Below are positions 7,747 to 57,351 of a DNA stretch of 64,000 bases, piece by piece. The stretch is taken from positions 62,001 to 126,000 of the IMG/VR virus record IMGVR_UViG_3300032236_002285; one strand, 5' to 3'. The first letter of the stretch is position 1; every line of letters starts with the position of its first letter. The notes beneath the pieces are model-generated. The model had not been told where the DNA came from and ran no database searches. It worked only from the letters and a program-made list of their open reading frames with translations. Made by a program: the position numbers and the translations under genes.

Positions 7747-7915
7747 GCATTATAAAGGTGGTACTTATGAAGTAATTACTTTAGCCACTCATACAGAAAC
7801 AGGGGAAAAGTTAGTAGTCTATAAGTCTATTAACTTTGGCTCTATTTATGTTAGACCTTTGGATATCTGGAATTCAACATCAGAAGATGGACAAAAAAGA
7901 TTTGAACTTATATGA
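7715..7915 (+). CDS. DUF1653-family protein
   Basis: RYKHYKGGTYEVITLATHTETGEKLVVYKS...YVRP...RFE. Confidence 0.85.
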   Translation: MVYPLPRQRYKHYKGGTYEVITLATHTETGEKLVVYKSINFGSIYVRPLDIWNSTSEDGQKRFELI

Positions 7916-8661
7916 GTAATATAGTTGATTTATTTAATAATAACTCTAAAGAGTTTATTGTCACCCAGCGTTGGATGGTTGAAAATAAAAACCTTACCAA
8001 CTTTGAGACTAGGAAGTTCTCAGTTCCGGTTTTAACATCAGAAATGAAAAATGAATATCTTAACATGGATATGACACCTCATCTAATTAGTGTTATTAAA
8101 AAAGAAATTAGTCAAGATGTAAATAACTTATTTAATAAAAAATTATTTACTACTAATAAGTTTGATTATTTAGATTTAAGACCTGATGGTTCTTTAATGA
8201 CAGGTAGATTATATCTTGAGAAATTGGTGAGTTTGATACTTAGTAATAATTACAAGAATTTAATTACTACTATACTTATATCTTCAGAGTTACAAGATAG
8301 TGCTTTTTTTTCGTCTTATATGACAACACATGACTTAAAGACTAGTGGTTTGCTTGAGTGTTATGGTAAATTGGGTAGTGTTGAAGTTTATGTCGACCCA
8401 TATATGAGGTATAATGATGGAAGAATATGTTTATTCAATGAAGTTGAGTTCAATATAGGCGAAATGAAGGCTTATGAGACTACACAAATTGGCTCCTTGG
8501 TTCCTAGAATTATTATAGAATATGATATTGATTATAATGTGGGAGATTCAAAATTAATCTTTGTTATTGAGAATGAAAAATCTGAGGCATATATGCAGTA
8601 TAAATCTCTACAAAGAGATATAAAAATTGACAACATTTTAGATGGCGGCACTACTTCCTAA
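7912..8661 (+). CDS. Degenerate major-capsid-derived protein
   Basis: GKLGSVEVYVDPYMRYNDGRICL vs capsid GSIGDISIYVDPYQRYNDNRIVL; ends RDIKIDNILD. Confidence 0.75.
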   Translation: MSNIVDLFNNNSKEFIVTQRWMVENKNLTNFETRKFSVPVLTSEMKNEYLNMDMTPHLISVIKKEISQDVNNLFNKKLFTTNKFDYLDLRPDGSLMTGRLYLEKLVSLILSNNYKNLITTILISSELQDSAFFSSYMTTHDLKTSGLLECYGKLGSVEVYVDPYMRYNDGRICLFNEVEFNIGEMKAYETTQIGSLVPRIIIEYDIDYNVGDSKLIFVIENEKSEAYMQYKSLQRDIKIDNILDGGTTS

Positions 8662-8863
8662 TACATTTCAAGTTACTAATCCAGGAGGATCAAACGCAAT
8701 GACTGTTGATCCGGATGGTAATACAGTTATAAATAAACTGGTTCTTTTAGATGAGAAAACTGGTAATAAATGGCAAGTTAAAATATCAGATGGTGAATTG
8801 GTCGTAGAACCACTAGAATTAGAAGATAAAAGAGAATTTAAATTAAATGAAATACTAAAATGA
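8642..8863 (+). CDS. Hypothetical protein with C-terminal REFKLNEIL motif
   Basis: ORF overlapping both neighbours. Confidence 0.65.
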   Translation: MAALLPNTFQVTNPGGSNAMTVDPDGNTVINKLVLLDEKTGNKWQVKISDGELVVEPLELEDKREFKLNEILK

Positions 8864-9408
8864 AAAAGTACAAAGTTTCTATATATGGATATGGAGCAGA
8901 AGTAACAATTGGCTCTGTAACTGAAGAACAAAAATTACTACTAACTAATCCTGATAAAGAATTGGTTGATTGTGTTCTTGAAGATTTAGAAGATTGGGGT
9001 GGATGGTATGAGATTGATAATCAGTACCATCGTTGGGGAGCCGCTGGTAATTTTACTATTCTTATTGAAGATGAAGAAGGTAAGATTTTGTATAAAATTG
9101 ATTCTGAGAATATTCATCAATTTGATACAGATGATTTTGAATTAGTTGACTATGAGTGTATTGAAGTTGATGAATCTCAAGACTTATTAATGTGTGTTGC
9201 TTATGAAAAAGGTTCTTTCTTTGAAGGTGATATTGAAACTGATGATTTTAATATTTCTAAATTGAGAATTAGAATTGACGGTGAGATTGGAATTGATGAG
9301 TGTTACTATGGTGATATGGTTCGTGGTGTTTACTATGATGATGAAGAAGTAGATAACTATGGTGGTAGCACCGATGGTAAATCATTTGAAGTTTATAAGA
9401 ACTTTTAA
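8860..9408 (+). CDS. Hypothetical acidic protein
   Basis: ATGA overlap with upstream gene; followed by terminator. Confidence 0.7.
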   Translation: MKKYKVSIYGYGAEVTIGSVTEEQKLLLTNPDKELVDCVLEDLEDWGGWYEIDNQYHRWGAAGNFTILIEDEEGKILYKIDSENIHQFDTDDFELVDYECIEVDESQDLLMCVAYEKGSFFEGDIETDDFNISKLRIRIDGEIGIDECYYGDMVRGVYYDDEEVDNYGGSTDGKSFEVYKNF

Positions 9409-9412
9409 AAAG

Positions 9413-9442
9413 AAAAAACCTCAGAGAAATCTGAGGTTTTTT
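9413..9442. terminator. Bidirectional terminator
   Basis: aaaaaacctcaga-gaaa-tctgaggtttttt between convergent genes. Confidence 0.85.
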
Positions 9443-9456
9443 AATTTATTAATATT

Positions 9457-9897
9457 TTACATCCAACCACCTTGTTGATTACCATGTGGATTTATTTCTT
9501 GACCATCCACCATTAAGTGAATTTCACCACCAATATTTTTTAGAGCGTTTTGTATAGCTTTAACAGCATATCCTTTTACAAGACCTTCTCCCTCAATTGA
9601 GATGTTACAAATACCTGGTGAGCCACCAAATTCTTCGTTAGTACCTTCTAACTCTTCAATTGCGTCAATTTTATCTTCAATCTCAGCTGGACTTAAATCG
9701 TCCATTTTATGAGTTACTTTATTGTACTTATATCTTGAATTAGCAAAATTCTTTTGATGCTCATCAGAATTTGGCTTGTTTTGTCTGTCCATTTTCTTCA
9801 ATTCTTCTTTTTCAGCATTAGGATTAGCCAAGAAGTCCTTGAAGTTAACCACTTTTCTATTTACATTGAAAGTTGGTTGGTTATCTTTATAGGTCAT
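9457..9897 (-). CDS. Hypothetical protein
   Basis: 146-aa ORF; TAATATATA upstream on the minus strand. Confidence 0.7.
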   Translation of the reverse strand: MTYKDNQPTFNVNRKVVNFKDFLANPNAEKEELKKMDRQNKPNSDEHQKNFANSRYKYNKVTHKMDDLSPAEIEDKIDAIEELEGTNEEFGGSPGICNISIEGEGLVKGYAVKAIQNALKNIGGEIHLMVDGQEINPHGNQQGGWM

Positions 9898-9979
9898 TTT
9901 ATAGAATTACTTTTTTGTATATATTAATTATCAAATCTCATTTATTTTATTTCAGAGACTCGGTTTTTTATATATAACT

Positions 9980-11347
9980 ATGATAGAAAACAAAAATCAA
10001 AAAATAGTGTATAATAAAGACATGAGTAAATTAGTAACATTAAACGGAAATAATGACCAAGAACTATTAAGTTCAATTTTCGACAATGAAATTGTTGTAT
10101 TTGAAGATATTCAAGGGTCAAAGATATGGGTAAATTGGAACGGTAAGGAATTTATTATTAAGCCAAAATCTACAAATAATGACCCAATTAATCTTATTGA
10201 TATGGCTATTCAAAATTATTACAATCCGGGTATTAAATACTTAGAGTCTTTAGATACAAGAGTTAAGTCATTATTGAATAAAAAATGGTGGTTTTGTTTT
10301 GAGTACTTTCCAGATGAGCAACCAGCTAATATTGAATATTCAAAAGTTCCTAAGAATCATTTAGTTTTAACAGCTATTAATAAAGGTGGTAAATACGACT
10401 TTAGTATTGAAGAGTTGGATGAGTATGCTAGATTGTTTGATGTTGATATGTTACCTATAGTTTTTCAAGGTAAGTTAAATGAAAGAATGATTGAAGCTAT
10501 TAAGTACTTTATTAATACAAGTGAAGATGATTTAGAGTATGTATTTGGTGAAAAGTCATTTTCTTTTTTCTTCTATAAGATATTAAATCCAAGTTCTACA
10601 AATTCTTTTTTAATGGATGATGAGAATTATCAGTCAAATTTAGAAAAGTTAATTGTTAGAACTAAAAAAGGTGATATTTCATTTGAAATATTAAATCCTT
10701 TATATAAAAGATTGAGTGATAATAACTCAACTGATTTTGTTGAAATTTATACATTGATATTAGTTAACTTCTTAAATTTCTGTCAGTCATTTAACTTAGA
10801 TGAGATTAAGTTAAAAGGTGAAAAAAGAGACGAGGTTTATATTTACCTAATGTCTAAGTTATTCAATGTTTATGTATCTGAAGTAAAACAAGATTTATTG
10901 GATTTTGACTTTGTGGTTCCTGAATTTTTTGATAAAGAAAAATTCAAAATCAATACAGAATTAATTCCTAATAAATTAACTAAAGACTACATTAAAGAGT
11001 CTGACAAGTTAGAATATATTTTTAAAGTTGTTCTTGGTTCATTTAACAAGAAAAGAAAAAAAGCCATTGGTGTATTTACTGATAATACCGTTATTTTATT
11101 TAATACGTTTGTTAATGATATTAACACTTATATTGAAAAGTATTTAAATAAAGTTCATGAGGTTGAGCTAACAAGAGCAGGTCTTTTAGATTTTGGTGAT
11201 TTCTTTGAAATTCAATATGACCAAGATTCAGAAGGTGATGTTTATCCAGATGTTTATTCTGAATTTGAAAAAGGCGCACCAGAGCAAAAGAAAAAAGGTA
11301 AAGGCGGTAAAGGCTTGCCTGTACCAGAAAGTCCATCTAAAAAGTAA
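9980..11347 (+). CDS. RNA-ligase (Rnl2)-like fold protein, catalytic Lys apparently replaced
   Basis: VFEDIQGSKI at the KxDGS motif-I position; FCFEY; LPIVFQG. Confidence 0.45.
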   Translation: MIENKNQKIVYNKDMSKLVTLNGNNDQELLSSIFDNEIVVFEDIQGSKIWVNWNGKEFIIKPKSTNNDPINLIDMAIQNYYNPGIKYLESLDTRVKSLLNKKWWFCFEYFPDEQPANIEYSKVPKNHLVLTAINKGGKYDFSIEELDEYARLFDVDMLPIVFQGKLNERMIEAIKYFINTSEDDLEYVFGEKSFSFFFYKILNPSSTNSFLMDDENYQSNLEKLIVRTKKGDISFEILNPLYKRLSDNNSTDFVEIYTLILVNFLNFCQSFNLDEIKLKGEKRDEVYIYLMSKLFNVYVSEVKQDLLDFDFVVPEFFDKEKFKINTELIPNKLTKDYIKESDKLEYIFKVVLGSFNKKRKKAIGVFTDNTVILFNTFVNDINTYIEKYLNKVHEVELTRAGLLDFGDFFEIQYDQDSEGDVYPDVYSEFEKGAPEQKKKGKGGKGLPVPESPSKK

Positions 11348-11547
11348 TGAAGTCTATTGATCTTAATATAAACTCTGTTGAAGTTAAAACCAGTGTAAAA
11401 TCTATTAAATCTACTTGGACTCAACAGCTAGCTTTTGATTTAGAATCATTCCATGGTGTTGATATGAATGAGTTTGAAAGAGTTTTTATTAGGGAAAAAA
11501 GAAAAAATGATAGAAAAAAATCTATCAATAAAATCTTCCAAAATTAA
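11347..11547 (+). CDS. Mini-protein derived from a gp23 spine-helix segment
   Basis: VKTSVKSIKSTWTQQLAFDLESFHGVD resembles the T4-type gp23 segment AKSRxLKAxW/YxxELAQDLxAxHGxD. Confidence 0.65.
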   Translation: MKSIDLNINSVEVKTSVKSIKSTWTQQLAFDLESFHGVDMNEFERVFIREKRKNDRKKSINKIFQN

Positions 11548-11548
11548 G

Positions 11549-11574
11549 AAACATACACTTTAATTTTCATATAA
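11549..11574 (+). promoter_or_regulatory. AAAC-N16-ATATAA candidate promoter
   Basis: Same motif and spacing at 15094(-), 19229, 20061, 25283 and 28487. Confidence 0.55.
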
Positions 11575-11579
11575 TTTGT

Positions 11580-12815
11580 ATGACGGTTTCAAGTGTAATT
11601 AAGTTAAGTGATATAGAATCATATTCATCAATCAAGAAGAATTTAGAAGGTAAAAAGTGTAGTTTACAATTTCTTCCAATTTCGTTAGAAACAATTTCCA
11701 AACAAAAGAATTTTACTTATAAAGGCCAAAAGCTGAAGTCAGCTTATTTAATTGATATTATTCATAATTTAATACTAAAGTATTATTTTAAGAAGGATAA
11801 TAAATTTCACTTAATGTCTCCTATTCTAAAGGAGAAGTATGGCTACTTATATAACTATTATATGGACTTCCTTATAGATAATGGCGTTCTTGTTTTATTA
11901 TCAAAGCATCAAAAAGGCAAAAGCTCAAGAGTATATGCTATTAGTGAATATATTCTAAGAGGAAGTATTATACGATTCAATAATAGTGATAAAGTCTTAT
12001 TAAAGAAATATAAGGCAAAAGTATCTCAGATTGAAGAAGATAAAATGGAAAATTCCTTAATAGATAATGATATCAAGATTAAATTAGTTAATGACTTATT
12101 TAAGGTCCAAGTTCAATTTGACCGTTCTATATTTTACTTAGATTCATTAAAAGGTGATGATGTTGATATCTATAATAGAAATAGATATTCAGTAGAATGT
12201 ATTAACGACAAACACATATTTTATCACTTTGATAGTTATGGTCGTATGCACACTAACTTTACCATCTTAAAATCATTTATTAGAAAGAATTGTTTATTGA
12301 TTAATGGTGAAGAAACCGCAGAAATTGATATTAAAAACTCTCAACCACTTTTCTTAACTAAGTTAATACAAGATTCTGGGTCTAAATGGGTTCATAAAGA
12401 CGAGTTTGAGTTGTTCAAAAGTCTTACAATAAATGGTACTTATTATAATTACATAATGGATCATCTTGGTACAAAAGATAGAGGTATGGTAAAAGAATTA
12501 ACTTATAAAGTTCTTTTTGGTAGAAATGGTGTTAATAGTAAAGCTGATAAGATTTTTAGTAGTTTATTTCCTACAATACATTATTTTATTAAACTTTATA
12601 AGAAAGAACATGGTGATTATAAAGTGCTAGCTTATGAGTTACAAAAGTCTGAAAGCAATCTTGTTTTCAATAAAATAATTAGACAAGTAATGACACTTTA
12701 TCCAGAAATAAATTTAGTTACCGTTCATGATAGTATAATCATGCAAAAGTCTTACAGGGATTCGGTTTGGGCTATATTTCAGACTAAACTTTATGAAGAA
12801 TTTGGGCTTATTTAA
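11580..12815 (+). CDS. Family-A polymerase-like palm protein without exonuclease domain
   Basis: YGRMHT, EIDIKNSQP (motif A), RGMVKELTYKVLFG (motif B), LQKSES, TVHDSI (motif C). Confidence 0.6.
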   Translation: MTVSSVIKLSDIESYSSIKKNLEGKKCSLQFLPISLETISKQKNFTYKGQKLKSAYLIDIIHNLILKYYFKKDNKFHLMSPILKEKYGYLYNYYMDFLIDNGVLVLLSKHQKGKSSRVYAISEYILRGSIIRFNNSDKVLLKKYKAKVSQIEEDKMENSLIDNDIKIKLVNDLFKVQVQFDRSIFYLDSLKGDDVDIYNRNRYSVECINDKHIFYHFDSYGRMHTNFTILKSFIRKNCLLINGEETAEIDIKNSQPLFLTKLIQDSGSKWVHKDEFELFKSLTINGTYYNYIMDHLGTKDRGMVKELTYKVLFGRNGVNSKADKIFSSLFPTIHYFIKLYKKEHGDYKVLAYELQKSESNLVFNKIIRQVMTLYPEINLVTVHDSIIMQKSYRDSVWAIFQTKLYEEFGLI

Positions 12816-12840
12816 GTATTAAAAAATTATATATAGTTAT

Positions 12841-13002
12841 ATGGAATTCAAACAATATCATTTAAAATCTAAATCAGCAAAAGAAACATTTGCTAAATAT
12901 ATGGCATCTAGTTTAGAAAGTGCTATTGAATATTTCTCAAGATTAAAAAGATTGCCTGTCCAGGATTTACTTGAAATCTATATTGTTACAGATCAAGTAT
13001 AA
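12841..13002 (+). CDS. Small hypothetical protein (53 aa, not in the ORF track)
   Basis: MEFKQYHLKS...IVTDQV; TTATATATA just upstream; fills the intergenic gap. Confidence 0.6.
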   Translation: MEFKQYHLKSKSAKETFAKYMASSLESAIEYFSRLKRLPVQDLLEIYIVTDQV

Positions 13003-13020
13003 TATTTTAATATATACTTT

Positions 13021-13560
13021 ATGATCGGATTAGAACACAAAGATGCTTCTTTTATTTTACTTTCTTCCACAAGGCTTGAAGATATGATTTCAATTCTTTA
13101 TGCTAAAGAATATCAAATTATCCCTATAAAGGGTTATTATAAAGGTCAATACGAGGATTCTGTTATGGGTTATGGTCGTGTTGATAATGATACTCTAAGA
13201 AATGATGTTCTTTTCCTATTAAACCACTTTCATGAAGAGTGCGCTATCATTAAATATAATGGTGAAACTAACGCTAAAAAGATATTCAGAGATGGCTCTG
13301 AAAAACCAATGGGTATTGTGATGTATAATACAGATGCTGATAACATGTCTTATTTATATAATGGTACATCATTTTCTTTTGTTGAGTCAAAAAGATATTG
13401 GAAACCAACTAAGAAAGAAGATTTCAGAGTTGGTATGTTAGTTGAGTATTTTAATAATAATAAGTGGTATGAAAAGCTTGTTGAAAATCCTAGTGATGAA
13501 TATGAAAAGCTTTATAAGTTACTTATAAAGTATGATAAAGTTAGAGTAGCTTCTAGATAA
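13021..13560 (+). CDS. Hypothetical protein
   Basis: TAATATATA-cttt-ATG start. Confidence 0.7.
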   Translation: MIGLEHKDASFILLSSTRLEDMISILYAKEYQIIPIKGYYKGQYEDSVMGYGRVDNDTLRNDVLFLLNHFHEECAIIKYNGETNAKKIFRDGSEKPMGIVMYNTDADNMSYLYNGTSFSFVESKRYWKPTKKEDFRVGMLVEYFNNNKWYEKLVENPSDEYEKLYKLLIKYDKVRVASR

Positions 13561-14329
13561 TTTCAAACCAATTTATACACTTTTCAAAATTTGGTGTTTC
13601 TTTTAAGAAATATCTCATGTCATTTGGACAATTTATTACATTTAATCCATTATCAGTTTTCTGAACATTTCTCATCATAATAATCTTATTTGATTTAATA
13701 TAAGGAGAAGGTATAACATTCATACCGTTAATATTTCCAGTTACAACACCGTCATTACTAGAAACCATCATTACATAAGACATAAGAAGATATTTATAAG
13801 CATCTAAACCAACTATAATAGTATTAGCTAACCCCATTCTACTTGTAGAAGCTATTAAATTACTAATCATTGATATTCTTGTCATAATTCTTTTAGATTT
13901 AGACATTTCATTTTCATAATCAGTTAGATTTCCATCTTTTATATAACTAATATTTAGATTTTGTGGAATATTCATAGGATTTGATGTTAATAATTCTAAA
14001 GTATTCATAACATCTGTATAAATATCTGTTAAATCTAAATATGTTTTACCTTGTACATTAATAGAATTAACCTTAGGTGATATAGTTGACATATATCCTT
14101 CATTGTCTAATGAGTTTAAAAACGGTTCTCTATTCTTAAACTCTTCTACTTTACCATCTACAATAGCATCAATAGCAAGTTCTCTATTCTTTCTTTTTAA
14201 CTCTCTTTGATACTCTTCATTTGGAGTTTCTTCAAAATCAATATACATCATCAATGTTTGAGGTTGTGATGGTTTTGTAGATTCTACATAGTTACAGATT
14301 TTTTCTAAATCTTTAGATGAAATTATCAT
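13553..14329 (-). CDS. Degenerate major-capsid-derived protein
   Basis: KRIMTRISMISNLIASTSRMGLANTIIV vs capsid RKLITKIAHASNYIATEGRVGPAQYLIT; GNINGMNVIPSPY vs GSIGDISIYVDPY. Confidence 0.7.
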   Translation of the reverse strand: MIISSKDLEKICNYVESTKPSQPQTLMMYIDFEETPNEEYQRELKRKNRELAIDAIVDGKVEEFKNREPFLNSLDNEGYMSTISPKVNSINVQGKTYLDLTDIYTDVMNTLELLTSNPMNIPQNLNISYIKDGNLTDYENEMSKSKRIMTRISMISNLIASTSRMGLANTIIVGLDAYKYLLMSYVMMVSSNDGVVTGNINGMNVIPSPYIKSNKIIMMRNVQKTDNGLNVINCPNDMRYFLKETPNFEKCINWFEII

Positions 14330-15074
14330 ACTTATTCTTCATTCCAATTTTTGGCAATTGGTTAAGAATAACCTTTTGTAATTGTGATTTGTCCATATTG
14401 GCAGTTGTGTTTAGTATTTGTAAGTTTCTTTGATACCATCTTGTATCTGGTTGAACTTTTTCATGATAAAGATGAAAACAACGAGCTTGTAATTCTGTCC
14501 AGGTTAAAAAGTTTTTTACTTTTAATGTTTGAAAATCATCTTCTCCACCCCAACCAATAAAGTCTTCATTCCAGCCTGCAATTCTCGTAATAGCATCTCT
14601 TCTAAACATAGCAATACCACCTGAGATATTAATTTTTTGATTATCATTTTCACCTCGACCAGGTCTGTTGATTTGAATCATTTGCTCAAATGGTAAAGTG
14701 CTTTCTTGTTGTGTTAAATCAACAACTGAGTGATAAGGGCTAACCATTTCATATTGGTTTAATTCATTCAAGCCTGTGATAAATTGATTTGGTTCCATGA
14801 TTAAGTCAGAGTCACCAAATACAATGATATTTGAATTAGCATTTTTTATAGCCACATTGAATGCCCAAGAACGATTGTAAGGCATATTTGATCTTGTGAA
14901 TATTTGTTTGGCTTTAAGATTTAGATGAGATATTTTAGAGTGTTTATCTTGTTCTATAAGAAGAACTTCAACATTCGCAAACCCATTAATCCAATCGAGA
15001 ACCCTTCTTAGATTTTGTAATCTTTCGGGATTGTGTCGATAACCTATAACATAGGTGAAGGAGTAATTTGACAT
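14313..15074 (-). CDS. Glycosyltransferase (GT2/GT7 C-terminal type)
   Basis: YNRSWAFNVA, FGDSD, GGIAMF, GWNEDFIGWGGEDDF. Confidence 0.85.
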   Translation of the reverse strand: MSNYSFTYVIGYRHNPERLQNLRRVLDWINGFANVEVLLIEQDKHSKISHLNLKAKQIFTRSNMPYNRSWAFNVAIKNANSNIIVFGDSDLIMEPNQFITGLNELNQYEMVSPYHSVVDLTQQESTLPFEQMIQINRPGRGENDNQKINISGGIAMFRRDAITRIAGWNEDFIGWGGEDDFQTLKVKNFLTWTELQARCFHLYHEKVQPDTRWYQRNLQILNTTANMDKSQLQKVILNQLPKIGMKNKYDNFI

Positions 15075-15188
15075 TATGAATATTATTTTTTATTTATATC
15101 AAATACTCTTCTTTTGTTTACTATCAATTTTTATTGATTTGGTAACTTTTTTATTTTTTTAATATACAATTAACATTAAATGTAATTA

Positions 15189-15590
15189 ATGGATAAAAAA
15201 GTAGGAAGAACTGAAAGTATTTCTTTTCCAGAACTAAATATAAAAAGCGTTAATGCTAAGATTGACACGGGTGCTTATGGTGTTGTAATGCATGTGGATA
15301 ATGTGGAATTAATTGATGATAAGTTGCACTTTTCAATTAATTCTAATACATTTGTATATGATAAATTTAAAACCATATCTGTTAAAAACTCTTTTGGTAA
15401 AGTTCAAAATAGATTTTCAATTTTGACTAAAATAGTAATTGGTGATTCAATATATAATTTTTATGTATCTTTAACCAATAGAAAAAAGATGAGATATCCT
15501 GTTTTAATAGGTCGAAGATTTCTTTATAAATTCAACTATTTAGTTGATGTAACAAAAAAGAATATAAATGATAGAAGTAAAGAGGTGTAA
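15189..15590 (+). CDS. Retropepsin-like protease (RimK-associated / Zn_protease family)
   Basis: AKIDTGA, VSLTNRKKMRYPVLIGRRFL. Confidence 0.85.
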   Translation: MDKKVGRTESISFPELNIKSVNAKIDTGAYGVVMHVDNVELIDDKLHFSINSNTFVYDKFKTISVKNSFGKVQNRFSILTKIVIGDSIYNFYVSLTNRKKMRYPVLIGRRFLYKFNYLVDVTKKNINDRSKEV

Positions 15591-16083
15591 TTATATAACT
15601 GGTAATCCTTCAGATGTTTCTTATGCAGTCAAAAAAATAGTTGACTTTTTAGAAATTGAAGGTAGAAACCCTCTTTTGCTTTATAAACCCTCTGAATCCA
15701 ATATCAAGTACTTCTTGTCTACAAAAATAGAATTTAATAATCTTAACCAGTTTATAGAAGTTATACATGATAAAAGTAAGCTTTTCAGAGTAGATTTACT
15801 TATTTTTGATTTCTGGCATTTAAGTGTTTCATCTATTATTGAGTATAAGTCACACATAGACAATTTAGGTATTGACTATATAATACTCGCTAAAGAATAT
15901 CATTATAAATCATCTGATGATGTTAATGATTTTCATGTTAAGTCTGAAAGAAAAGAAAGTTTTTCTAATGAATATTGGATAACTGATAAAATATCTGGAT
16001 GGACCTCTGATCTTTCTGGTCTTACAAAATCCTACATTCGTAATAAAAAAATTGATGATATCTTTAATAAAGATTCTGAATAA
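15568..16083 (+). CDS. Hypothetical protein with C-terminal RNKKIDDIF motif
   Basis: ORF in operon. Confidence 0.7.
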   Translation: MIEVKRCNYITGNPSDVSYAVKKIVDFLEIEGRNPLLLYKPSESNIKYFLSTKIEFNNLNQFIEVIHDKSKLFRVDLLIFDFWHLSVSSIIEYKSHIDNLGIDYIILAKEYHYKSSDDVNDFHVKSERKESFSNEYWITDKISGWTSDLSGLTKSYIRNKKIDDIFNKDSE

Positions 16084-16115
16084 TTTGTATATTGTTAATA
16101 AATTATTTATATTTG
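16084..16115 (+). promoter_or_regulatory. Bacteroidota sigma-70-type promoter
   Basis: TTTG-N20-TATATTTG. Confidence 0.7.
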
Positions 16116-16142
16116 TATAAATAGTAATATAATAGCAATATA

Positions 16143-17237
16143 ATGAGAATTAGACGCAAGTTTTTACAACTTACAAGATATACTTATCCTTATGGTACAG
16201 AAGGATTTCTAAAGTCATATCTACCCGAAGGTACTAAAAAAGATGCCTATGGTAACTACTATCACCTGGTAGGAGAAAATCCAACAACTATGTTTACTTG
16301 TCACTTAGATACCGCTTGTTCAAAGCAGGTTAAAGTGAATCATGTCTTAGTAGGAAATACAATTAAAACTGATGGTAAAAGCATTTTAGGTGCTGATGAT
16401 AAAGCCGGTATGGTTGTTGTTCTTAACATGATTGAAAATAAAGTTCCAGGGCTTTACTATTTCTTTATAGGTGAAGAAGTTGGTTGTATTGGCTCTGGTA
16501 AATTAGCAGAGAATTGGGCTAATATTAAATTTAGTAATACTATTTCCAAAGTTGTTTCTTTTGACAGACGAAGTGATTGTTCTGTTATTACACATCAATT
16601 TTATGGTCGTTGTTGCTCTGATGAATTTGCTGAAGAGCTTTCTTTTAGATTAAATTCAACTGGTCAAAGATTAAATTTAGAACCAGATGATACAGGCGTT
16701 TTAACTGACTCGGCTCAGTTTATGGAGATTGTACCAGAGTGTACAAATATTTCTGTTGGTTATATGTATGAGCATACTACAAATGAGTGCCAAGATATTG
16801 ATTATCTTCAAAGATTATGTAAGGCTGTTTGTTTAATTGACTGGGAATCTTTACCAGTTGAAAGAGATCATACAGAAGAAGAATATGATTATGATTACTA
16901 TGATGAAGATGATTATGAATATGAGGAGGTTAAGTTTGTTGAGGATTTCTACTCATATTTTTTGGTGAATGGTAAAACTAAAAAGATGTATATATCAAGT
17001 GATGTGATTGCAAAAGAACATGATATAATTTTTAATTGGTTACAAGCTTATGGCTATTCTGAATTAGAAAGTATTGACTGGAATGGTAACTCGTTACATG
17101 TTAAAACTAGTAATGGTGCTCAAGAGTTTGTTGGAAATAGAGTTGAACTTATGGAGATGATTTCTGAACTAAGTTCAGTTCCTATGAGTAAGATTAAAGA
17201 GAATTTAAATAATGATAAGTCGGAATTAGTACTTTAA
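16143..17237 (+). CDS. M20/M28-family Zn peptidase-like protein (paralog 2)
   Basis: FTCHLDT, LGADDKAG, GEEVGCIGS, SFDRR, TDS, HT. Confidence 0.8.
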   Translation: MRIRRKFLQLTRYTYPYGTEGFLKSYLPEGTKKDAYGNYYHLVGENPTTMFTCHLDTACSKQVKVNHVLVGNTIKTDGKSILGADDKAGMVVVLNMIENKVPGLYYFFIGEEVGCIGSGKLAENWANIKFSNTISKVVSFDRRSDCSVITHQFYGRCCSDEFAEELSFRLNSTGQRLNLEPDDTGVLTDSAQFMEIVPECTNISVGYMYEHTTNECQDIDYLQRLCKAVCLIDWESLPVERDHTEEEYDYDYYDEDDYEYEEVKFVEDFYSYFLVNGKTKKMYISSDVIAKEHDIIFNWLQAYGYSELESIDWNGNSLHVKTSNGAQEFVGNRVELMEMISELSSVPMSKIKENLNNDKSELVL

Positions 17238-17238
17238 T

Positions 17239-17268
17239 AAAAAAGAGGACTTTAAGTCCTCTTTTTTT
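17239..17268. terminator. Bidirectional terminator
   Basis: aaaaaagaggact-tta-agtcctctttttt. Confidence 0.85.
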
Positions 17269-17455
17269 ATCCTAATATCAAACCAGGTGTTTTATATTGT
17301 TTTTGAGATACAATTTCTAACATTTGGTTAGTTGATAATTCTTTTGGATTCCAACCTTTACTTTTAGAGTATTCGTTTAAGAATTTTTCTCTTAGTAAAT
17401 TTAGTTCTTGTTGTGATAAACTTGAATTTTTGATTAATTCTGAATCGTTGTTCAT
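17267..17455 (-). CDS. Small hypothetical protein
   Basis: 62-aa ORF ending at a terminator. Confidence 0.65.
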   Translation of the reverse strand: MNNDSELIKNSSLSQQELNLLREKFLNEYSKSKGWNPKELSTNQMLEIVSQKQYKTPGLILG

Positions 17456-17472
17456 AAAAATTTATTTATTTT

Positions 17473-17901
17473 TTATAATAGGAATAGGTATATAAAAACT
17501 TGAGCTAGTATACCAACTGACATAGCCAAAGTTCTTTTTTTATAAGATGTTAATGGCGTAAATGGTGGAAAAGTTTTGGACTCATCTGTCCATCTTTTTG
17601 GATAAGACCTTCCGTCTAATTTATTTCTTGTGTAATAGTAAGTTCCGTTATGAAAAAAGCTAAACATAAACACCATTGAGGCTACACTGAGTATTGAAAT
17701 AATACCTAAGCTTAAAAATAAAAAACCTCCCATTGTTAATAAAACTAAAGCTCTTTGTAGATTAAATATTGGATTGATGTCAAAGTCACATACTCTTCTG
17801 CTATTATTTTCATAATGCCAGTAAAAACCTTCTCGTACACCTTCTGTTAGTGCATATCCAACCCAAATTAAATTTGATAATATAAGTGTAGTTAATATCA
17901 T
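17473..17901 (-). CDS. Hypothetical membrane protein
   Basis: Several hydrophobic segments. Confidence 0.7.
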   Translation of the reverse strand: MILTTLILSNLIWVGYALTEGVREGFYWHYENNSRRVCDFDINPIFNLQRALVLLTMGGFLFLSLGIISILSVASMVFMFSFFHNGTYYYTRNKLDGRSYPKRWTDESKTFPPFTPLTSYKKRTLAMSVGILAQVFIYLFLL

Positions 17902-17951
17902 ATTCTTGATTATTTATTGTATATATAAAATTTTATTTGTATCTTTGTATC

Positions 17952-18425
17952 ATGTTAGAAATGAAAGGCATATTAGAATTTGACCCAGTTAACGTCACCA
18001 AGAAGCACTTAGCTCAGTCTTCTTGGAAGAGAACTGCTATGGTTCGTTTTGATTGTGACCTTTGGGAATACTATGCTTGGTTTCTTCAAAAAAGATTCAA
18101 CTTAAAGTTAAATAAGCCTTTAAGAGGAACCCACTTAACTATCATTAACGATAGATTTGAATCTGATGAATTATATGCTCAAGCTCGTCAATTATTTCAT
18201 GGTAAAGAAATTACCGTGCAATATGACCCTTCTAAAATAAGAGCAAATAATAAAGGTCACTGGTGGATAAATGCTGATAGTGCAGATGCTAGAAATATTA
18301 GAAGTGTAATAGGATTAGATCCTAATCCTTACTTTGGTTTCCACATCACTATTGGTTTGGCTACTCACTTGCAATTAGAACACTCTAAATATATCTTAGA
18401 TCAATGTATAAGATTCAACCTGTAA
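17952..18425 (+). CDS. 2H phosphoesterase-family protein
   Basis: Two HxT motifs (GTHLTII, GFHITIG); TATCTTTG at 17940-17947 upstream. Confidence 0.65.
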   Translation: MLEMKGILEFDPVNVTKKHLAQSSWKRTAMVRFDCDLWEYYAWFLQKRFNLKLNKPLRGTHLTIINDRFESDELYAQARQLFHGKEITVQYDPSKIRANNKGHWWINADSADARNIRSVIGLDPNPYFGFHITIGLATHLQLEHSKYILDQCIRFNL

Positions 18426-18892
18426 TAGATCATATTCAGAAAGCATATGGATTTGAAATTGTCCCTTGTTCAATACCAAGGGACAATTTTCAATATTTTA
18501 AAATGTTTGTTTATTTATTTATACTTGATAAAGTAAGCAAGAGGTTGTTCTTCTTTTTAAGAGATAAAGTTTCACCTATTAGATATTTAGATGAAAGACC
18601 AAATAAAGAACTTTGGTTTTGTAAAAAAAATTCAAATGGTAAAGTTTTAATGGAAGTTGAGATAAAGCCTATTCTAGTTTCAGCGTGTATTTATACAACA
18701 GATTATAAGAATATATTTAAACCAACCTGTGGAAATTATAAAGTAAAGTTATATTTACAAGGTCAAGGTGAAATAATGACTTTTCCTCTAAATCATATTA
18801 GAGGTATTGAAAATATAGATGCTCATTTTAGTGATGTTCTGGAGTTGAAAGAGATATTAAGAGATTATAAATTAAAAAATATTCTAAACTAA
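18404..18892 (+). CDS. Hypothetical protein with C-terminal RDYKLKNIL motif
   Basis: ORF in operon. Confidence 0.65.
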   Translation: MYKIQPVIDHIQKAYGFEIVPCSIPRDNFQYFKMFVYLFILDKVSKRLFFFLRDKVSPIRYLDERPNKELWFCKKNSNGKVLMEVEIKPILVSACIYTTDYKNIFKPTCGNYKVKLYLQGQGEIMTFPLNHIRGIENIDAHFSDVLELKEILRDYKLKNILN

Positions 18893-19242
18893 TGGATGAC
18901 TTCTTTGATAGTTTTAAGGGTAAACCAAAACACGATCATAAAGTCAGAGTAGTTCACTTTAAGAAAGAACCTTTTGATATTTATATTGGTCGTCTTCCAA
19001 ATGGTAAATATAACAAATGGGCCTACCCAAAAGAACTGCGTGAAAGCTTTCCAGAAGGTACTCCTCGAAAAGTTATTGTAGATGCTTATGAACAATATCT
19101 TCTTTCTAATGAAGAACTAATGAATGATTTACATGAACTAAAAGATAAAGTTCTTGGTTGTTGGTGTAAAAATGAAGGTGGTGGTGGTAAATCTTGCCAC
19201 GGTGACATACTTGTTAAATGGGTTAAGAAAACTTGTAACTAA
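18892..19242 (+). CDS. DUF4326-family protein
   Basis: VVHFKKEPFDIYIGR, LKDKVLGCWCK, CHGDIL. Confidence 0.85.
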   Translation: MDDFFDSFKGKPKHDHKVRVVHFKKEPFDIYIGRLPNGKYNKWAYPKELRESFPEGTPRKVIVDAYEQYLLSNEELMNDLHELKDKVLGCWCKNEGGGGKSCHGDILVKWVKKTCN

Positions 19243-19275
19243 AATTTGATATAATCAATATCAAATTTATATCAG

Positions 19276-20061
19276 ATGCCAGAACTAGCAGAAATCAAAA
19301 TAATGTCCGATTATATTAATCATCATAGTAAGGACAGAACATTCAAAAAAATATATCACGTTGAAAAGGGTAACATACCCGTTGACTCAAATCTAATTGA
19401 AAACTTCAAAGTAGAAGCTGTTTCTAATGGTAAAGAGTTAGTTCTAAGGGTCTATCATGATGATGCCGATCTTAAATTCTCAATATTTATGGGTATGTCT
19501 GGTAATTGGCTATTTACGCCAACTGAAAGTTGGTCTGATAGAAAGTTCACCAGAATGAGATTAGATACAACTGATGGTAACTCACTTTTACTTTATGGTC
19601 TTTATATGGGTCCTAAATATCGTTTAGGTGGCTTTACTGGTGTTAAGAGAGGCTTTGATCCAACTAAAGAATTTGATAGCTTCAAAAAAGAAGTTATTTC
19701 TAATTTAGATAAAAAGGTATTTGACAAACCTATCTGTGAGGCTTTATTAGACCAAAAATACTTCAATGGCATCGGTAACTATTTAAGAAGTACAATACTT
19801 TATTACTTAGATGTTAATCCATTTGAACAAGCAAGAAAAGTTATCAAGGATTTTCCTAATGTTTTAGACTTATGTAAGGATATTCCATTAATGGCTTATA
19901 AATTAAATGGTGGTCAGTTAGCTGATTGGAAGAATCCTTTTGATAGTGACTTTGAAGAGTTCAAAAAGTGGGTATTTTATCAAAAAGGCATTTCTTGTAA
20001 GGATAAAACAGGTAGAACTTTTTGGTATAATGAAAAGTGGAAAGATGATTGTCCATACTAA
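19276..20061 (+). CDS. Fpg/Nei-family DNA glycosylase (zinc-finger-less)
   Basis: N-terminal MPE; GKEL; MGMSG; H2TH LLDQKYFNGIGNYLRSTILY. Confidence 0.9.
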   Translation: MPELAEIKIMSDYINHHSKDRTFKKIYHVEKGNIPVDSNLIENFKVEAVSNGKELVLRVYHDDADLKFSIFMGMSGNWLFTPTESWSDRKFTRMRLDTTDGNSLLLYGLYMGPKYRLGGFTGVKRGFDPTKEFDSFKKEVISNLDKKVFDKPICEALLDQKYFNGIGNYLRSTILYYLDVNPFEQARKVIKDFPNVLDLCKDIPLMAYKLNGGQLADWKNPFDSDFEEFKKWVFYQKGISCKDKTGRTFWYNEKWKDDCPY

Positions 20062-20089
20062 AACATATTTACAATAATTAATATAATAA

Positions 20090-20572
20090 TTGATGTTTGA
20101 TAAAAATTTCAATATTATACATGGTGATAGAGTGTCTGGTAGAACTCAGTTTATACTCACTATATCTAGAATTTTCAATGAGTCAGGTGTTAAACTTTTC
20201 TTTTTAGCTTGTGCTGGTGATAATATTGATAGTTCTCCTTTTGACGATTATAGAATAATAAACACATTTGATGAGGTTAATAATCAAAAAGTTATAGAGG
20301 TTATTAAAGAACTAACAGATAAAAAGAAATATAATTTCCTAATTATAGATGATATTGACTATTTACCAAAATCTTGTTTAGATTTATTATCGAATATAGA
20401 TGTAATTAAAATAGCAACTTGTCTAACAGATAATTGTAAAAAATTACCAGAAGAATCAAACTTTTATAATATTAATGATGTTAGTGACTTATCTGATATC
20501 AATGATTTTATAAAGGGTATAATTAGAAATCAAAAAATAAATTCAGTATTAAAAGATGATAAAAGCAGATAA
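20090..20572 (+). CDS. Degenerate P-loop-like protein with C-terminal RNQKINSVL motif
   Basis: GDRVSGRT and FLIIDDID resemble Walker A and B. Confidence 0.5.
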   Translation: MMFDKNFNIIHGDRVSGRTQFILTISRIFNESGVKLFFLACAGDNIDSSPFDDYRIINTFDEVNNQKVIEVIKELTDKKKYNFLIIDDIDYLPKSCLDLLSNIDVIKIATCLTDNCKKLPEESNFYNINDVSDLSDINDFIKGIIRNQKINSVLKDDKSR

Positions 20573-34807: not shown

Positions 34808-34841
34808 GTAAAAAAATTAATAAAAATTAAAAATATAGATT

Positions 34842-46565: not shown

Positions 46566-46730
46566 ATGGCTATTTGGGAAAATATTCCTTTGATTAAAAG
46601 AGAATCTATAAAAAAATCTTTATATAGATTTGATAGAATACAAAGCAGGAAAAAGAAAATTATCAATTTGTTATGTCATTTGCAAGAGGTTGGGGTAAAG
46701 ACGGCTGGAAACACAGACAAGAAGATTTAA
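46566..46730 (+). CDS. Small protein (54 aa, not in the ORF track) with RKKKIINLL
   Basis: MAIWENIPLIK...TDKKI; TAATG coupling to the next small ORF. Confidence 0.5.
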   Translation: MAIWENIPLIKRESIKKSLYRFDRIQSRKKKIINLLCHLQEVGVKTAGNTDKKI

Positions 46731-46831
46731 TGAAGGAATCTTGGGAGATTTTCAGAATAACAAATAGAAAAAGAATAAGAAAATCTAAAATTAATAACAT
46801 ATTTAATGAAGTTAGGAAAGAAGTCAAGTGA
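46730..46831 (+). CDS. Small protein (33 aa) with RKSKINNIF
   Basis: MKESWEIFRITNRKRIRKSKINNIFNEVRKEVK. Confidence 0.45.
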   Translation: MKESWEIFRITNRKRIRKSKINNIFNEVRKEVK

Positions 46832-47066
46832 TTTAGAACCAGGTTATGTTTATGTTCCTTATATTCCAATAACAACATCACAAGTTATAGTTGGTTATGG
46901 TTCTAAAAACATAAATAGAAAAAGAAAGATTAATAAAATATTTGATTTAGGTTTAGATATTAAAGATGAATTCTCACCAAGTAAATCAATTATGAGTAGA
47001 TACTCAACAAAGAATATAAATAGTAAATATTACGGAACTATAGAAATAAAAAATCCCACTTTATAA
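46806..47066 (+). CDS. Mini-protein derived from the capsid C-terminal segment
   Basis: PGYVYVPY...FSPSKSIMSRYS...YYGTIEI vs capsid PGIIFVPY...FAPRMLLRSRYA...YMTIKV. Confidence 0.75.
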   Translation: MKLGKKSSDLEPGYVYVPYIPITTSQVIVGYGSKNINRKRKINKIFDLGLDIKDEFSPSKSIMSRYSTKNINSKYYGTIEIKNPTL

Positions 47067-49937: not shown

Positions 49938-50375
49938 TTAGTTTTTACTATCTAATACGTCACTGAGTTGTTTGTTTCTTAAAGATTGAATATCAATATC
50001 AGTTTCAACATACTCAAAGAAATCTAATTCTACCATTTCTCTGTATTTTTTTGATTCTTCTTCATTGGCCATGTTGTGTAGTCTATTTTCAACTGACTCC
50101 CATTTATTTTTAGCCTCTGGTTTACCATATTTTTTATTGAGAGATTCATTGAATTTTTCATATTCTTCGATGCTGACTCTTAGGATATCTTCCATTTCAT
50201 ATGTGTACTCACTAATAGAACACTCCTTAAACTCTTTAGTGTTCAGTTCATCAACTTTTTGTTGAGCTTCTTCTTTTGAAAAAACTATTAGATTTGGATT
50301 CCCACCTTCTGTTGGGTTGTAAATGTTATCATCATATTCAAATCCTTTTCTTAAAATTACATACGCTTTTTTCAT
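49938..50375 (-). CDS. Hypothetical protein with C-terminal RNKQLSDVL motif
   Basis: 145-aa ORF. Confidence 0.7.
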   Translation of the reverse strand: MKKAYVILRKGFEYDDNIYNPTEGGNPNLIVFSKEEAQQKVDELNTKEFKECSISEYTYEMEDILRVSIEEYEKFNESLNKKYGKPEAKNKWESVENRLHNMANEEESKKYREMVELDFFEYVETDIDIQSLRNKQLSDVLDSKN

Positions 50376-55480: not shown

Positions 55481-55882
55481 CTACCACTCTCTTTCTTTAT
55501 CTTTTGGTTTGTGTCCTATTTTAGATATTACTAATTCATAGTAGGCATCAGTTTGACCAAAATCTGAAGAATACACATATAAATTAAACTCTTTTAGATG
55601 TTCATTTACATCATTAATTAGTTCAAATATCTTTGGTTCAACATAATGTAAAACAGATAAATCAATCATAGATTCATATCCGGACTCATTAAATACAATA
55701 ATAAAACAATTATCATCTTTTTCAATTAAAGATGATTGTAAAGAATCTTCTACATAGTATTCTAATTTAGGGAACTCATCAGTTATATGATAAAGTATCT
55801 CACTTAAATCTTGATATGATATATCAAAATCATTTTGTAGTGAAAATCTTTCTGTTATAAATTGATTGTATTTCTTTATCAT
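55481..55882 (-). CDS. Hypothetical protein with CTS-like N-terminus
   Basis: MIKKYNQFITE. Confidence 0.7.
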   Translation of the reverse strand: MIKKYNQFITERFSLQNDFDISYQDLSEILYHITDEFPKLEYYVEDSLQSSLIEKDDNCFIIVFNESGYESMIDLSVLHYVEPKIFELINDVNEHLKEFNLYVYSSDFGQTDAYYELVISKIGHKPKDKEREW

Positions 55883-55884
55883 AA

Positions 55885-56358
55885 TTAAACTAAGCTAAGG
55901 ACTATAGTTCTCAAATCTTTCATCCCTACGTTCATTTTTGTTTTTTCTTTGTATTCACCTTTAAGATACTGTTCAAGTTCTTCCCAGGATAAGAGTTTAT
56001 CACTTAGTCCACCAAATGATTTTTCAATATAGTATAACATTTTTACTCCTGATATTTCTTTTTCAGATATAAGATATTTTATTCTAGGTGTTACGAAGTC
56101 AATAAACTTATCATATTTTGACTTTATTTCATCTATATTATACTCATCTTTTAAACGTCTTCTATTATACTCTTCTGAATCATGATATATCTTGTCAATT
56201 AAAGCAAATACTATTGATGGTCCACGATCACTAAAGTTTTTAGAATAGTAGCAAACAGGAATACCAAAGTATTCATTGATATCCTCAATAAGGTCAACAA
56301 CTAATATTTCTAAATCATCTTTAGATTCGTTTAGAAATTGATTATATTTCTTTATCAT
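55885..56358 (-). CDS. Hypothetical protein with CTS-like N-terminus
   Basis: MIKKYNQFLNE; TAATATATA-cttt-ATG. Confidence 0.7.
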   Translation of the reverse strand: MIKKYNQFLNESKDDLEILVVDLIEDINEYFGIPVCYYSKNFSDRGPSIVFALIDKIYHDSEEYNRRRLKDEYNIDEIKSKYDKFIDFVTPRIKYLISEKEISGVKMLYYIEKSFGGLSDKLLSWEELEQYLKGEYKEKTKMNVGMKDLRTIVLSLV

Positions 56359-56373
56359 AAAGTATATATTAAT

Positions 56374-56404
56374 TTTGACAATTCAAGTATTTTCTTTATC
56401 TTTG
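56374..56404 (+). promoter_or_regulatory. Bacteroidota sigma-70-type promoter
   Basis: TTTG-N19-TATCTTTG. Confidence 0.7.
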
Positions 56405-56422
56405 TATTATAAATCACTACAA

Positions 56423-56875
56423 ATGCAAGGTCGTAAGTTAAAAAATTCAGATGCTCTTAAATTTATGTTTGCTGGTAAATCTATTGTTACTTTTTTGAAT
56501 ACCAAAACCGGCAATCGTTTTACTTTTAAGATAAAAGCCGCTAAAGACTCTAATATGTTTTTTGTTAGTATTTTGAATGGTCCTGAAAACTTTACTTATA
56601 TTGGAACTTGCATTGAAGGTAAGTTTAGACACGGTAGCAAATCTAATATATCAGCTGATGCTCAGTCTGTAAAAGTATTTGATTTTGTTTTAACTAAGCT
56701 TGTATTAGGAACTTTACCAGAGTTTGTTGAAGTTTGGCACGAGGGTCATTGTGGTAAATGTGGTAAAAGATTAACAGTTCCTTCTTCTATTAAAAATGGC
56801 TTAGGACCGGAGTGTATTAAAACTCTTACTAAGATGGAAAAAAGAGATAAATTTTTACAATTGATACTATCATGA
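56423..56875 (+). CDS. DUF6011-type zinc-ribbon protein
   Basis: CGKCGKRLTVPSSIKNGLGPEC; start revised to ATG 56423. Confidence 0.8.
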   Translation: MQGRKLKNSDALKFMFAGKSIVTFLNTKTGNRFTFKIKAAKDSNMFFVSILNGPENFTYIGTCIEGKFRHGSKSNISADAQSVKVFDFVLTKLVLGTLPEFVEVWHEGHCGKCGKRLTVPSSIKNGLGPECIKTLTKMEKRDKFLQLILS

Positions 56876-57351
56876 TTGTAGCTTTAATGCCTTTTATTTT
56901 TATTGCTTATTATATTTTTCTAATTAAAAAAAGAAAGAGTATTTCATATGATCTTAAACATGGTTTAAGATGCTTTTCTTGTAAAGAAGAAATAGAAATG
57001 AGTGATATTGATAAATATAATCTACTATCTGATATACTTAATAAGTTAAAAAATAATGAAGATGCAAAGAAATTTACCATTTGTAAATCCTGTGAGCGAA
57101 ATCAAAAATTAGATGATTTAGTTACACACAAAGGAGTATCAAGAATTAATAAATTAAAAATATTTCTTATATCTGAAAAATCAAATAAATTAAATTTATG
57201 GTTAATATTTGGCTTAGTTTTATTTCTGTTAATAGATGTCTTTTTTAGGATATTTTTTAAAATTAACTTTTTCAGCTATATTTATAATATCTATCTGTGC
57301 TTTTACTGGTGTATTATGATATACAAACAAAAAATTACTTCAATAAAATAA
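56872..57351 (+). CDS. Membrane protein with CxxC/CxxC zinc finger
   Basis: CFSC...CKSC; N- and C-terminal hydrophobic segments. Confidence 0.65.
   Translation: MIVALMPFIFIAYYIFLIKKRKSISYDLKHGLRCFSCKEEIEMSDIDKYNLLSDILNKLKNNEDAKKFTICKSCERNQKLDDLVTHKGVSRINKLKIFLISEKSNKLNLWLIFGLVLFLLIDVFFRIFFKINFFSYIYNIYLCFYWCIMIYKQKITSIK

Follow-up and report, generated by a model that had tools for sequence, protein, structure and literature searches.

A nine-residue motif with the consensus R-[DE]-x-K-[IL]-[NKD]-x-[IL]-[L/F/I] stands at or close to the C-terminus of about 100 proteins encoded by a single huge-phage genome. It was noticed in a window of 64,000 nucleotides (nt), bases 62,001-126,000 of the 476,236-bp IMG/VR virus record IMGVR_UViG_3300032236_002285 (29.9% G+C, CheckV completeness 97%; G000 below). 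There an initial annotation had listed about 14 cases; the motif is far commoner than the window alone had suggested. The peptide is clearly held by purifying selection and is confined to one phage clade. Judged from sequence, it appears to behave as a clade-specific docking or address tag, and we consider it probable, though by no means certain, that this tag is read by one common partner, whichever partner that may be.

Occurrences were counted in a simple set of non-overlapping open reading frames (ORFs; 86 in the window and 649 in the genome, 94-95% coverage). A strict pattern, R..[KQS][IL]..[ILV][LF] at most seven residues from the C-terminus, was found in 57 proteins, compared with 0.2 expected from whole-protein shuffles and 0.37 from shuffles of the last 20 residues. 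A semi-strict pattern that admits all endings matched 87 of the 649 ORFs (0.85 expected), and a relaxed pattern matched 112 (6.8 expected). Within the window, 8 of the 86 ORFs carried the relaxed pattern no more than six residues from the C-terminus, against 0.8 expected from shuffles of the last 20 residues. Bearers make up about 13-17% of the ORFs and about 10% of the coding capacity. Reversed proteins gave one match to the strict pattern, and genome-wide no strict motif was located within seven residues of an N-terminus. The semi-strict occurrences fell within eight residues of the C-terminus in 87 of 109 cases, and internal matches numbered 16 where 4.6 were expected. These counts confirm that the peptides form a genuine short linear motif, enriched over composition-matched shuffles, and that the C-terminal bias extends across the genome. 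They also bear on chance as an explanation. Since the genome has 30% G+C, C-termini rich in K, I, N and L are expected, and the consensus codons are all A+T-rich; however, the shuffles fall far short of the observed numbers, related phages with about 35% G+C contain no bearers and Flavobacterium-type genomes contain noise only. Shuffling and relative-genome controls together refute chance and composition, to which we give practically no weight. When the non-bearers were searched de novo for another enriched C-terminal motif, nothing comparable emerged.

In the position table of the 57 strict cases, where R at position 1 is fixed by the search pattern, K occupied position 4 in 49 cases, followed by I/L, I/L/V and L/F. 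When position 1 was freed, R was still present in 57 of 62 cases. Freeing one position at a time also uncovered 21 genes with a second ending, R-[DE]-x-K-L-x-x-L-G-I-COOH, as well as endings in I-I and substitutions that position 4 tolerates. Information was limited to the nine motif columns, with less than 1 bit per column elsewhere; a weak hydrophobic preference was seen at position -4, and the stretch upstream of the motif was rich in E, K and L, a composition that suggests a helix. The motif was followed by an unconserved tail of 0-8 residues (0-7 in the strict cases, most often a single K or N), and only 10 of the 57 strict cases ended exactly at the motif. An AlphaFold2 model of one 75-residue bearer family placed a helix at residues 61-71, the best-scored part of a prediction that was poor overall (pLDDT 53). 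As modelled, the motif makes up the final two and a half turns of an amphipathic helix. Searched as a profile against PDB chains, it gave no match at E-values up to 10, and no description of the motif, or of C-terminal tags in huge or jumbo phages, was found in the literature searched.

The proteins that carry the motif are otherwise unrelated, as had been proposed from the window: 55 of the 57 strict bearers were BLASTP singletons once the motif was cut off. Pfam assigned eight families and PHROGs 16, each matching one or two of the 112 bearers, with the rest unmatched and no family common to all. The scattered assignments included DUF2158, DUF6011, DUF1660, Cse60, a TacA-like antitoxin, an acyl carrier protein and two Gp23-like capsid fragments; in the DUF2158 bearer the motif is located on an additional C-terminal stretch of about 25 residues. 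A single paralogous family is ruled out by the lack of similarity beyond the motif, the low information outside the nine residues and the absence of a common family. Bearers had a median length of 110 residues, compared with 184 for other proteins, and were not enriched in membrane segments (7%) or zinc ribbons, while 68 of 112 had no homologue in either of two complete relatives, G001 and G003. They are thus mostly small and soluble proteins that turn over quickly in evolution.

Several observations indicate that selection acts on the peptide rather than on DNA or RNA. Codon choice at the motif positions followed genome-wide usage, including that of arginine (AGA 42, CGT 10 and CGA 4, with 43.9, 6.6 and 1.9 expected); the sole departure was a preference for ATA where isoleucine occupies position 8. 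A weight matrix of 27 nt, derived from the instances, found 53 sites above threshold, of which 46 were in frame at an ORF end, 4 in frame but internal, 2 intergenic and 1 antisense, with none in the other two frames of genes. Between orthologues the amino acid was kept at 195 of 248 key positions, and 80 of those 195 used a different codon. Because codon usage is genome-like, the sites are restricted to one frame and codons have changed synonymously between orthologues, selection must have acted on the amino acids. An alternative in which the 27-nt coding stretch provides microhomology for the shuffling of gene cassettes, with the peptide as a by-product, would account for the many bearers without a homologue in the complete relatives and for their arrangement in tandem arrays. 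However, third codon positions are free, and synteny breaks are symmetric (25 of 44 on the 3', or motif, side and 23 of 39 on the 5' side) and only slightly more frequent than at small non-bearers (45-47%). We regard a recombination linker as very improbable.

The motif is also closely positioned relative to the next gene. In 68 of 96 same-strand cases the downstream ATG lay between -1 and +8 nt from the last motif codon, and this spacing held even where the upstream frame continued for two to six codons more. On account of this spacing, the tail can be understood as read-through of the next gene's start, with the last motif residue being the last one under constraint. Overlap with the next gene was found for 58% of bearers and 23% of small non-bearers. 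Such an arrangement, which is indifferent to the position of the stop codon, could mean that the motif RNA or the nascent peptide promotes termination-reinitiation in a host without Shine-Dalgarno initiation. Yet the codon usage shows no constraint at the RNA level, no start codon adjoins the bearer downstream in 34% of cases (16 face an oppositely oriented gene and 22 are separated from the next gene by more than 10 nt), and the motif is missing from about two thirds of the junctions at which genes overlap (roughly 121 of 186). Moreover, the spacing ranges over 9 nt and two frames, motif-negative relatives manage without the motif, and tight spacing is what genome compaction would produce if the last motif residue is the last constrained one. 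A translation signal is therefore an improbable explanation.

In GenBank the phage is closest to the 'uncultured phage' records LR745206.1 and LR756501-4 (634-735 kb), whose counterparts of a 455-residue protein adjoining the head genes are 47-77% identical to it; a megablast search of window positions 7000-21000 against GenBank phages gave no close relative. Neighbouring genes in LR745206.1 retain the motif. In G001 and G003 the C-terminal motif was kept in 49 of 53 orthologues, at an average identity outside the motif of 50%, and among 34 metagenomic orthologues of one 75-residue bearer R was nearly invariant while the L-G-I and I-L-[E/D] endings interchanged. A profile search returned 79 matches in LR745206.1, 64 in LR756502.1, 29 in G001, 21 in G003, 17 in G002, 2-17 in each of G011-G014, 4 in LR756504.1 and 2 in LR756500.1; by regular expression, G001 has 33 bearers among 465 ORFs and G003 has 32 among 417. 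No profile match was obtained in LR756501.1 or G004, one in G005 and 0-2 in G015-G019, and the regular expression found no bearer among the 531 ORFs of G004 or the 443 of G005, the related phages of similar size with about 35% G+C referred to above. A de novo search for C-terminal motifs in G004 likewise returned nothing comparable. Five Flavobacterium-type genomes (12 Mb together) gave six noise-level matches, located in open frames of 31-92 residues, and mimicry of a host signal is ruled out by this lack of real matches. This distribution across relatives and Flavobacterium-type genomes indicates that the motif is specific to the clade, is not a product of A+T-richness and is not used by host proteins.

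A further array was seen in the 735-kb LR756501.1, where segment 240001-290000 contains, at 34100-38530 on the minus strand, about ten small ORFs in tandem that end in E-F-K-N-[FWY]-x-R-T-x-L-I-D-x-[MI]-[L/T/C]. This array may be the form that the tag takes in that lineage, or else a single family of paralogues.

Bearers cluster in co-directional arrays, and the interval 340-476 kb of the genome holds 59 of the 112 among 231 genes. Two promoter-like motifs were associated with the units to which bearers and other genes belong. The first, TTTAATATATA, was found in 83 of 248 intergenic segments, always oriented with the downstream gene and at one of two fixed distances from its ATG (10-15 or 25-35 nt). 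Genes preceded by it include those for the head protease, UvsX and many proteins of more than 1000 residues. It occurs in the window upstream of, for example, 1890, 2612, 9897 (minus strand), 21944, 36997, 41248 and 59106 (minus strand), and probably serves as a phage-specific promoter of the middle or late class. The second is the established Bacteroidota sigma-A promoter consensus, TTG-N19-TAnnTTTG. It precedes many operons, often as TATCTTTGTA, with examples in the window upstream of 5002, 16143, 25334, 36997, 59213 and 61636, and the host-type TAnnTTTG form stands mainly before small-gene arrays. Many of these promoters end just 4 nt before the ATG, and the early mRNAs would therefore be leaderless or nearly so. 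Bearers constituted 68 of 204 genes (33%) in TTG-N19-TAnnTTTG units and 12 of 168 (7%) in TTTAATATATA units (Fisher p = 2e-10), which suggests that they are probably, in the main, early proteins. The phage ClpP, described below, is closest to the ClpP of Flavobacterium and other Flavobacteriaceae (48-51% identity), and since the promoters are of the Bacteroidota type, the two observations point to a Flavobacteriaceae-like host.

The distribution over promoter classes is relevant to the possibility that the tag attaches to the scaffold or the inside of the capsid and that many small effectors are thereby packaged in the huge head, to be injected along with the DNA. Small, diverse and fast-evolving proteins that share one terminal signal, at the share of ORFs found here, have the signature of translocated effectors; a Gp23-like capsid protein is represented among the bearers by two fragments, and several window bearers are encoded just downstream of head genes. 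The P22 scaffolding protein contacts the coat through R293 and K296 on its C-terminal helix, which the R-x-x-K of the motif recalls. More generally, the T4 capsid-targeting sequence, the P22 helix and encapsulin peptides resemble the motif in being short, terminal and amphipathic and in being borne by unrelated proteins, which those signals load into an HK97-fold shell. On the other side, capsid-loading systems differ from the present one in that bearers are mostly located in early-type units, and bearers are depleted in units of the phage-specific promoter, which precedes the head protease and large, presumably virion genes. The T4 sequence is N-terminal and is cleaved off, while the motif is C-terminal, is absent from N-termini and shows no protease-site pattern beside it. 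The C-terminal consensus of encapsulin cargo-loading peptides is of the L-x-I-G-S-L-K type, not R-[DE]-x-K-[IL]-x-x-[IL]-L. Loading into the capsid is, in our assessment, unlikely.

If the tag is read by a common partner, the conserved arginine and lysine and three hydrophobic side chains on one face of the helix would bind that single partner, which would give many different early proteins one fate in terms of location, timing or stability. A reading without any common partner would have the helix act in self-association or stabilization, allowing small proteins to dimerize, to co-assemble or to be capped. The helix is self-complementary, with R/K and D/E charges and a hydrophobic face; the upstream stretch may itself be helical, the comparison of gene content described below yielded no hub, and host proteins lack the motif. 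However, a stable oligomer would need more than nine residues, and a promiscuous shared helix would cross-link about 100 different proteins. That the arginine is nearly invariant in about 100 unrelated folds, and that the motif is conserved throughout the lineage, also argues for one fixed reader, and we consider self-association rather unlikely.

The leading candidate for the partner, which we put forward tentatively and do not regard as probable, is the phage's own ClpC-like ATPase acting with ClpP. Domain profiles identified a ClpC/ClpA-like two-ring ATPase of 710 residues (G000 284643-286775, plus strand) with AAA, AAA_lid_9, UVR (a short M-domain), AAA_2 and ClpB_D2-small domains, no Clp_N domain, and VGF at residues 556-558, the site of the ClpP-docking loop. 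A ClpP of 252 residues (E = 1.6e-54) is encoded at G000 440754-441512 on the minus strand, in an early-type unit among bearers. The genome thus encodes both an AAA+ unfoldase with a ClpP-docking loop and ClpP, as a ClpC-ClpP tether requires. Viral homologues of the ATPase number 566 in IMG/VR, and the N-termini of the 76 that were compared took three forms: a full Clp_N, which is the usual adaptor/substrate domain, nothing, or a conserved peptide of about 25 residues of the type Y-x-x-x-P-D-I-K-A-A-L-E-D-D-D-D-D, which is amphipathic and poly-acidic. The peptide-form ATPases, in which the peptide stands in place of a lost Clp_N, constitute one clade (SH-aLRT 99) that holds all 10 motif-positive genomes tested, with seven motif-negative genomes outside it, a co-occurrence that is suggestive of a link to Clp. 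With such a partner the tag would be a degron that limits the lifetime of early proteins or, alternatively, an SspB-like tether by which small adaptor proteins deliver targets. A proteome-wide code, in which the tag marks about 100 early effectors for a ClpC-like/ClpP machine whose N-domain has been replaced by an acidic peptide receptor, appears doubtful; under such a code the tagged proteins would be cleared on schedule or would form an adaptor library that feeds chosen host proteins to the phage protease.

Known Clp tethers and degrons offer partial parallels. The C-terminal XB motif of SspB is LRVVK, the C-terminus of MuA is RRKKAI, and recognition of the ssrA tag requires a free C-terminal carboxylate. 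These signals and the motif are alike in being short, basic-hydrophobic C-terminal peptides that would bring unrelated proteins to one AAA+ machine, and the phage encodes a ClpC-like ATPase and ClpP; they differ in sequence, and the motif is predicted to be helical and tolerates 0-8 residues after it. We know of no precedent for about 100 bearers of a Clp-type tag in one genome. The nearest published ideas are that small early phage proteins can be ClpCP adaptors, with Gp53 of phage SPO1, an adaptor-like modulator of ClpCP, as a precedent (PMC6873191), and that host proteins may be targets of the ClpP and Clp ATPases of jumbo phages, which may alternatively serve as translocases (PMC7824862).

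Comparison of gene content, for genes present in G001 and G003 and absent from G004 and G005, gave 106 non-bearer proteins specific to motif-positive genomes. The ten best-conserved early candidates were ligases, a methylase, NUDIX, M28 and DUF2201 peptidases and unknowns, none of them an evident hub. Sliding clamps were considered as well, since clamp-binding peptides (the PIP box QxxLxxFF, bacterial QL[SD]LF and the tails that bind T4 gp45) are similarly C-terminal, have hydrophobic residues at i, i+3 and i+4 and, as the tag may do, serve a hub with many clients. They differ in that Arg and Lys are the best-conserved residues here, rather than Gln or aromatics, and the motif contains neither a Gln followed by an aromatic residue or Leu nor paired aromatics. 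The beta-clamp profile PF00712 had no match in G000 and was positive in 10 control genomes; the gp45 profile PF02916 had none in G000 and none in any control genome either, so that this search has no working control.

Several points weigh against a common partner, and against Clp in particular. Every proposed partner is at present a candidate, and no evident peptide-binding hub was found among the 106 clade-specific proteins. The term 'early' derives from promoter-like motifs, and 31 bearers are located in units without a recognised promoter. The match between motif and ATPase peptide involves a single branch of the tree, that is, one evolutionary event without independent replication, and relatives whose ATPase lacks the peptide or has a full Clp_N contain no such motif. 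The ATPase of LR756501.1 carries a complete Clp_N and lacks a VGF loop, and a search of that record gave no ClpP; because of this state, the link to Clp fails if the R-T-x-L-I-D-x-M-L array of LR756501.1 belongs to the same system. Because the tail varies over 0-8 residues, a free carboxylate is not read, unlike that of ssrA, and the motif does not occupy the extreme C-terminus as an ssrA-type degron does. The amphipathic docking helix of the initial annotation therefore stands in part: the motif is amphipathic and helical in one model, under selection as a peptide and borne by unrelated carriers, whereas for docking there is a candidate partner only.

Two further classes of short signal can be set beside the motif. 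Effector motifs such as oomycete RxLR, Plasmodium PEXEL and type IV secretion C-terminal signals likewise place one motif on hundreds of small, unrelated and rapidly evolving proteins, which account for a large part of the proteome; they serve eukaryotic or bacterial secretion systems, while here the carrier is a phage. The membrane-targeting helices of MinD and FtsA are also short, C-terminal and amphipathic with Lys/Arg. However, they are poorly conserved and lack acidic residues, whereas the motif has a conserved D/E at position 2, N/D at position 6 and only three hydrophobic residues.

Most genes of huge phages are small orphans that offer no handle, and a peptide shared by about one sixth of a proteome supplies one. 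It defines a functional class, probably early and probably concerned with host takeover, that can be recognised from sequence alone in related metagenomic phages, and a single peptide is a simple bait for the partner. Were that partner the phage Clp machine, tag and protease together would be the first such system to be encoded by a phage and to act on a large client set, and an adaptor library would amount to a viral arsenal for targeted degradation in bacteria. A capsid partner would instead imply that a tailed phage loads cargo by means of a C-terminal code, in analogy to encapsulins. With either a Clp or a capsid partner, the tag could direct foreign proteins to the same destination.

All peptides quoted in the initial annotation are present in the window, the accompanying numbers being ORF starts and not motif positions; its description of the motif as mostly C-terminal holds for eight ORFs, with 1-6 residues after the motif, and the remaining cases are internal, several of them probably outside the system. 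The first two C-terminal copies are in adjacent genes. RDIKIDNIL (8614-8640, plus strand) ends six residues before the end of ORF 7912-8661 (249 residues, no family), the downstream ATG at 8642 begins 1 nt past it, and the LR745206.1 orthologue has RDIKIDTLL. REFKLNEIL (8831-8857, plus strand) is followed by K and the stop of ORF 8642-8863 (73 residues), which the next ATG overlaps (AAATGA), and reads REYKLNKIF in the G001 orthologue. RKKSINKIF (11512-11538, plus strand), an F-type copy, precedes QN and the stop of ORF 11347-11547 (66 residues), which is conserved in LR745206.1 and G001; the motif is unchanged in the G001 orthologue at 36% identity outside it. Residues 2-42 of this protein match an internal piece of the Pfam Gp23 major-capsid profile, and a second tiny Gp23-matching ORF is encoded at G000 297490-297717 (75 residues). 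Both end in the F-type tag R-x-x-S-I-N-K-I-F.

RNKKIDDIF (16039-16065, plus strand), with CGT as its arginine codon, is followed by NKDSE and the stop of ORF 15568-16083 (171 residues); the next gene starts 77 nt downstream, and orthologues have RDKKINDIF and RDIKINKLF. RDYKLKNIL (18860-18886, plus strand) precedes N and the stop of ORF 18404-18892 (162 residues), whose probable LR745206.1 counterpart, paired by gene order and not by alignment, has RELKLNTLL. RNQKINSVL (20525-20551, plus strand) has the tail KDDKSR in ORF 20090-20572 (160 residues), with the downstream ATG 4 nt past the motif and hence within the tail; the G001 orthologue, 36% identical overall, has RDQKIKSVL. RNKQLSDVL (49953-49979, minus strand) precedes DSKN and the stop of ORF 49938-50375 (145 residues) and has no adjacent downstream start, the nearest being 61 nt away. 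RDKFLQLIL (56843-56869, plus strand), with F at position 4, is followed by S and the stop of ORF 56375-56875 (166 residues), a DUF6011/phrog_20259 protein whose G003 orthologue has RDNFLKLIL.

The internal copies are more heterogeneous. RDLKINKLI (26069-26095, plus strand) begins at residue 246 of the 555-residue helicase encoded by ORF 25334-27001 and is kept in LR745206.1 as RDLKLNKLF, and RNQKLDDLV (57097-57123, plus strand) directly follows a CxxC at residue 76 of 159 in ORF 56872-57351; for both, membership of the system is uncertain. RKKKIINLL, RKSKINNIF and RKRKINKIF are basic internal copies at 46647-46943 (plus strand), in three small ORFs and three frames between 46566 and 47066, and may be tandem copies of the F-type subfamily that have decayed or undergone frameshifts. 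The weak match RELAIDAIV (14159-14185, minus strand; residue 49 of 258, ORF 13553-14329) is probably due to chance.

Other genes in the window encode a T4-like major head protein, a prohead peptidase, a DNA polymerase, helicases, a ribonucleotide reductase and a UvsX-like recombinase, and no tRNAs were found there. The polymerase ORF 22859-24385 (508 residues) covers only approximately positions 109-505 of an 856-position polymerase profile, and the gene may be split or truncated. The UvsX-like recombinase (57880-59106, minus strand) has an acidic C-terminal tail, ...DSSDADDIFG, which resembles the D-D-D-I-P-F tail of bacterial SSB. Three window ORFs, 3967-4404, 5002-5325 and 19276-20061, have endings of the D-D-x-P-[W/Y] kind (DDYPW, DAPWYW and DDCPY), for which there was no genome-wide enrichment; these proteins may be the set that the initial annotation termed 'CTS'. 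Elsewhere in the genome, unusual cargo genes encode the RNase P protein component (G000 440376-440675, minus strand), a tyrosinase-domain protein (447214-448671, minus strand), an NAD-dependent ligase with BRCT (205698-207527, plus strand) and a DUF2201 metallopeptidase/VWA protein (364935-366518, plus strand).

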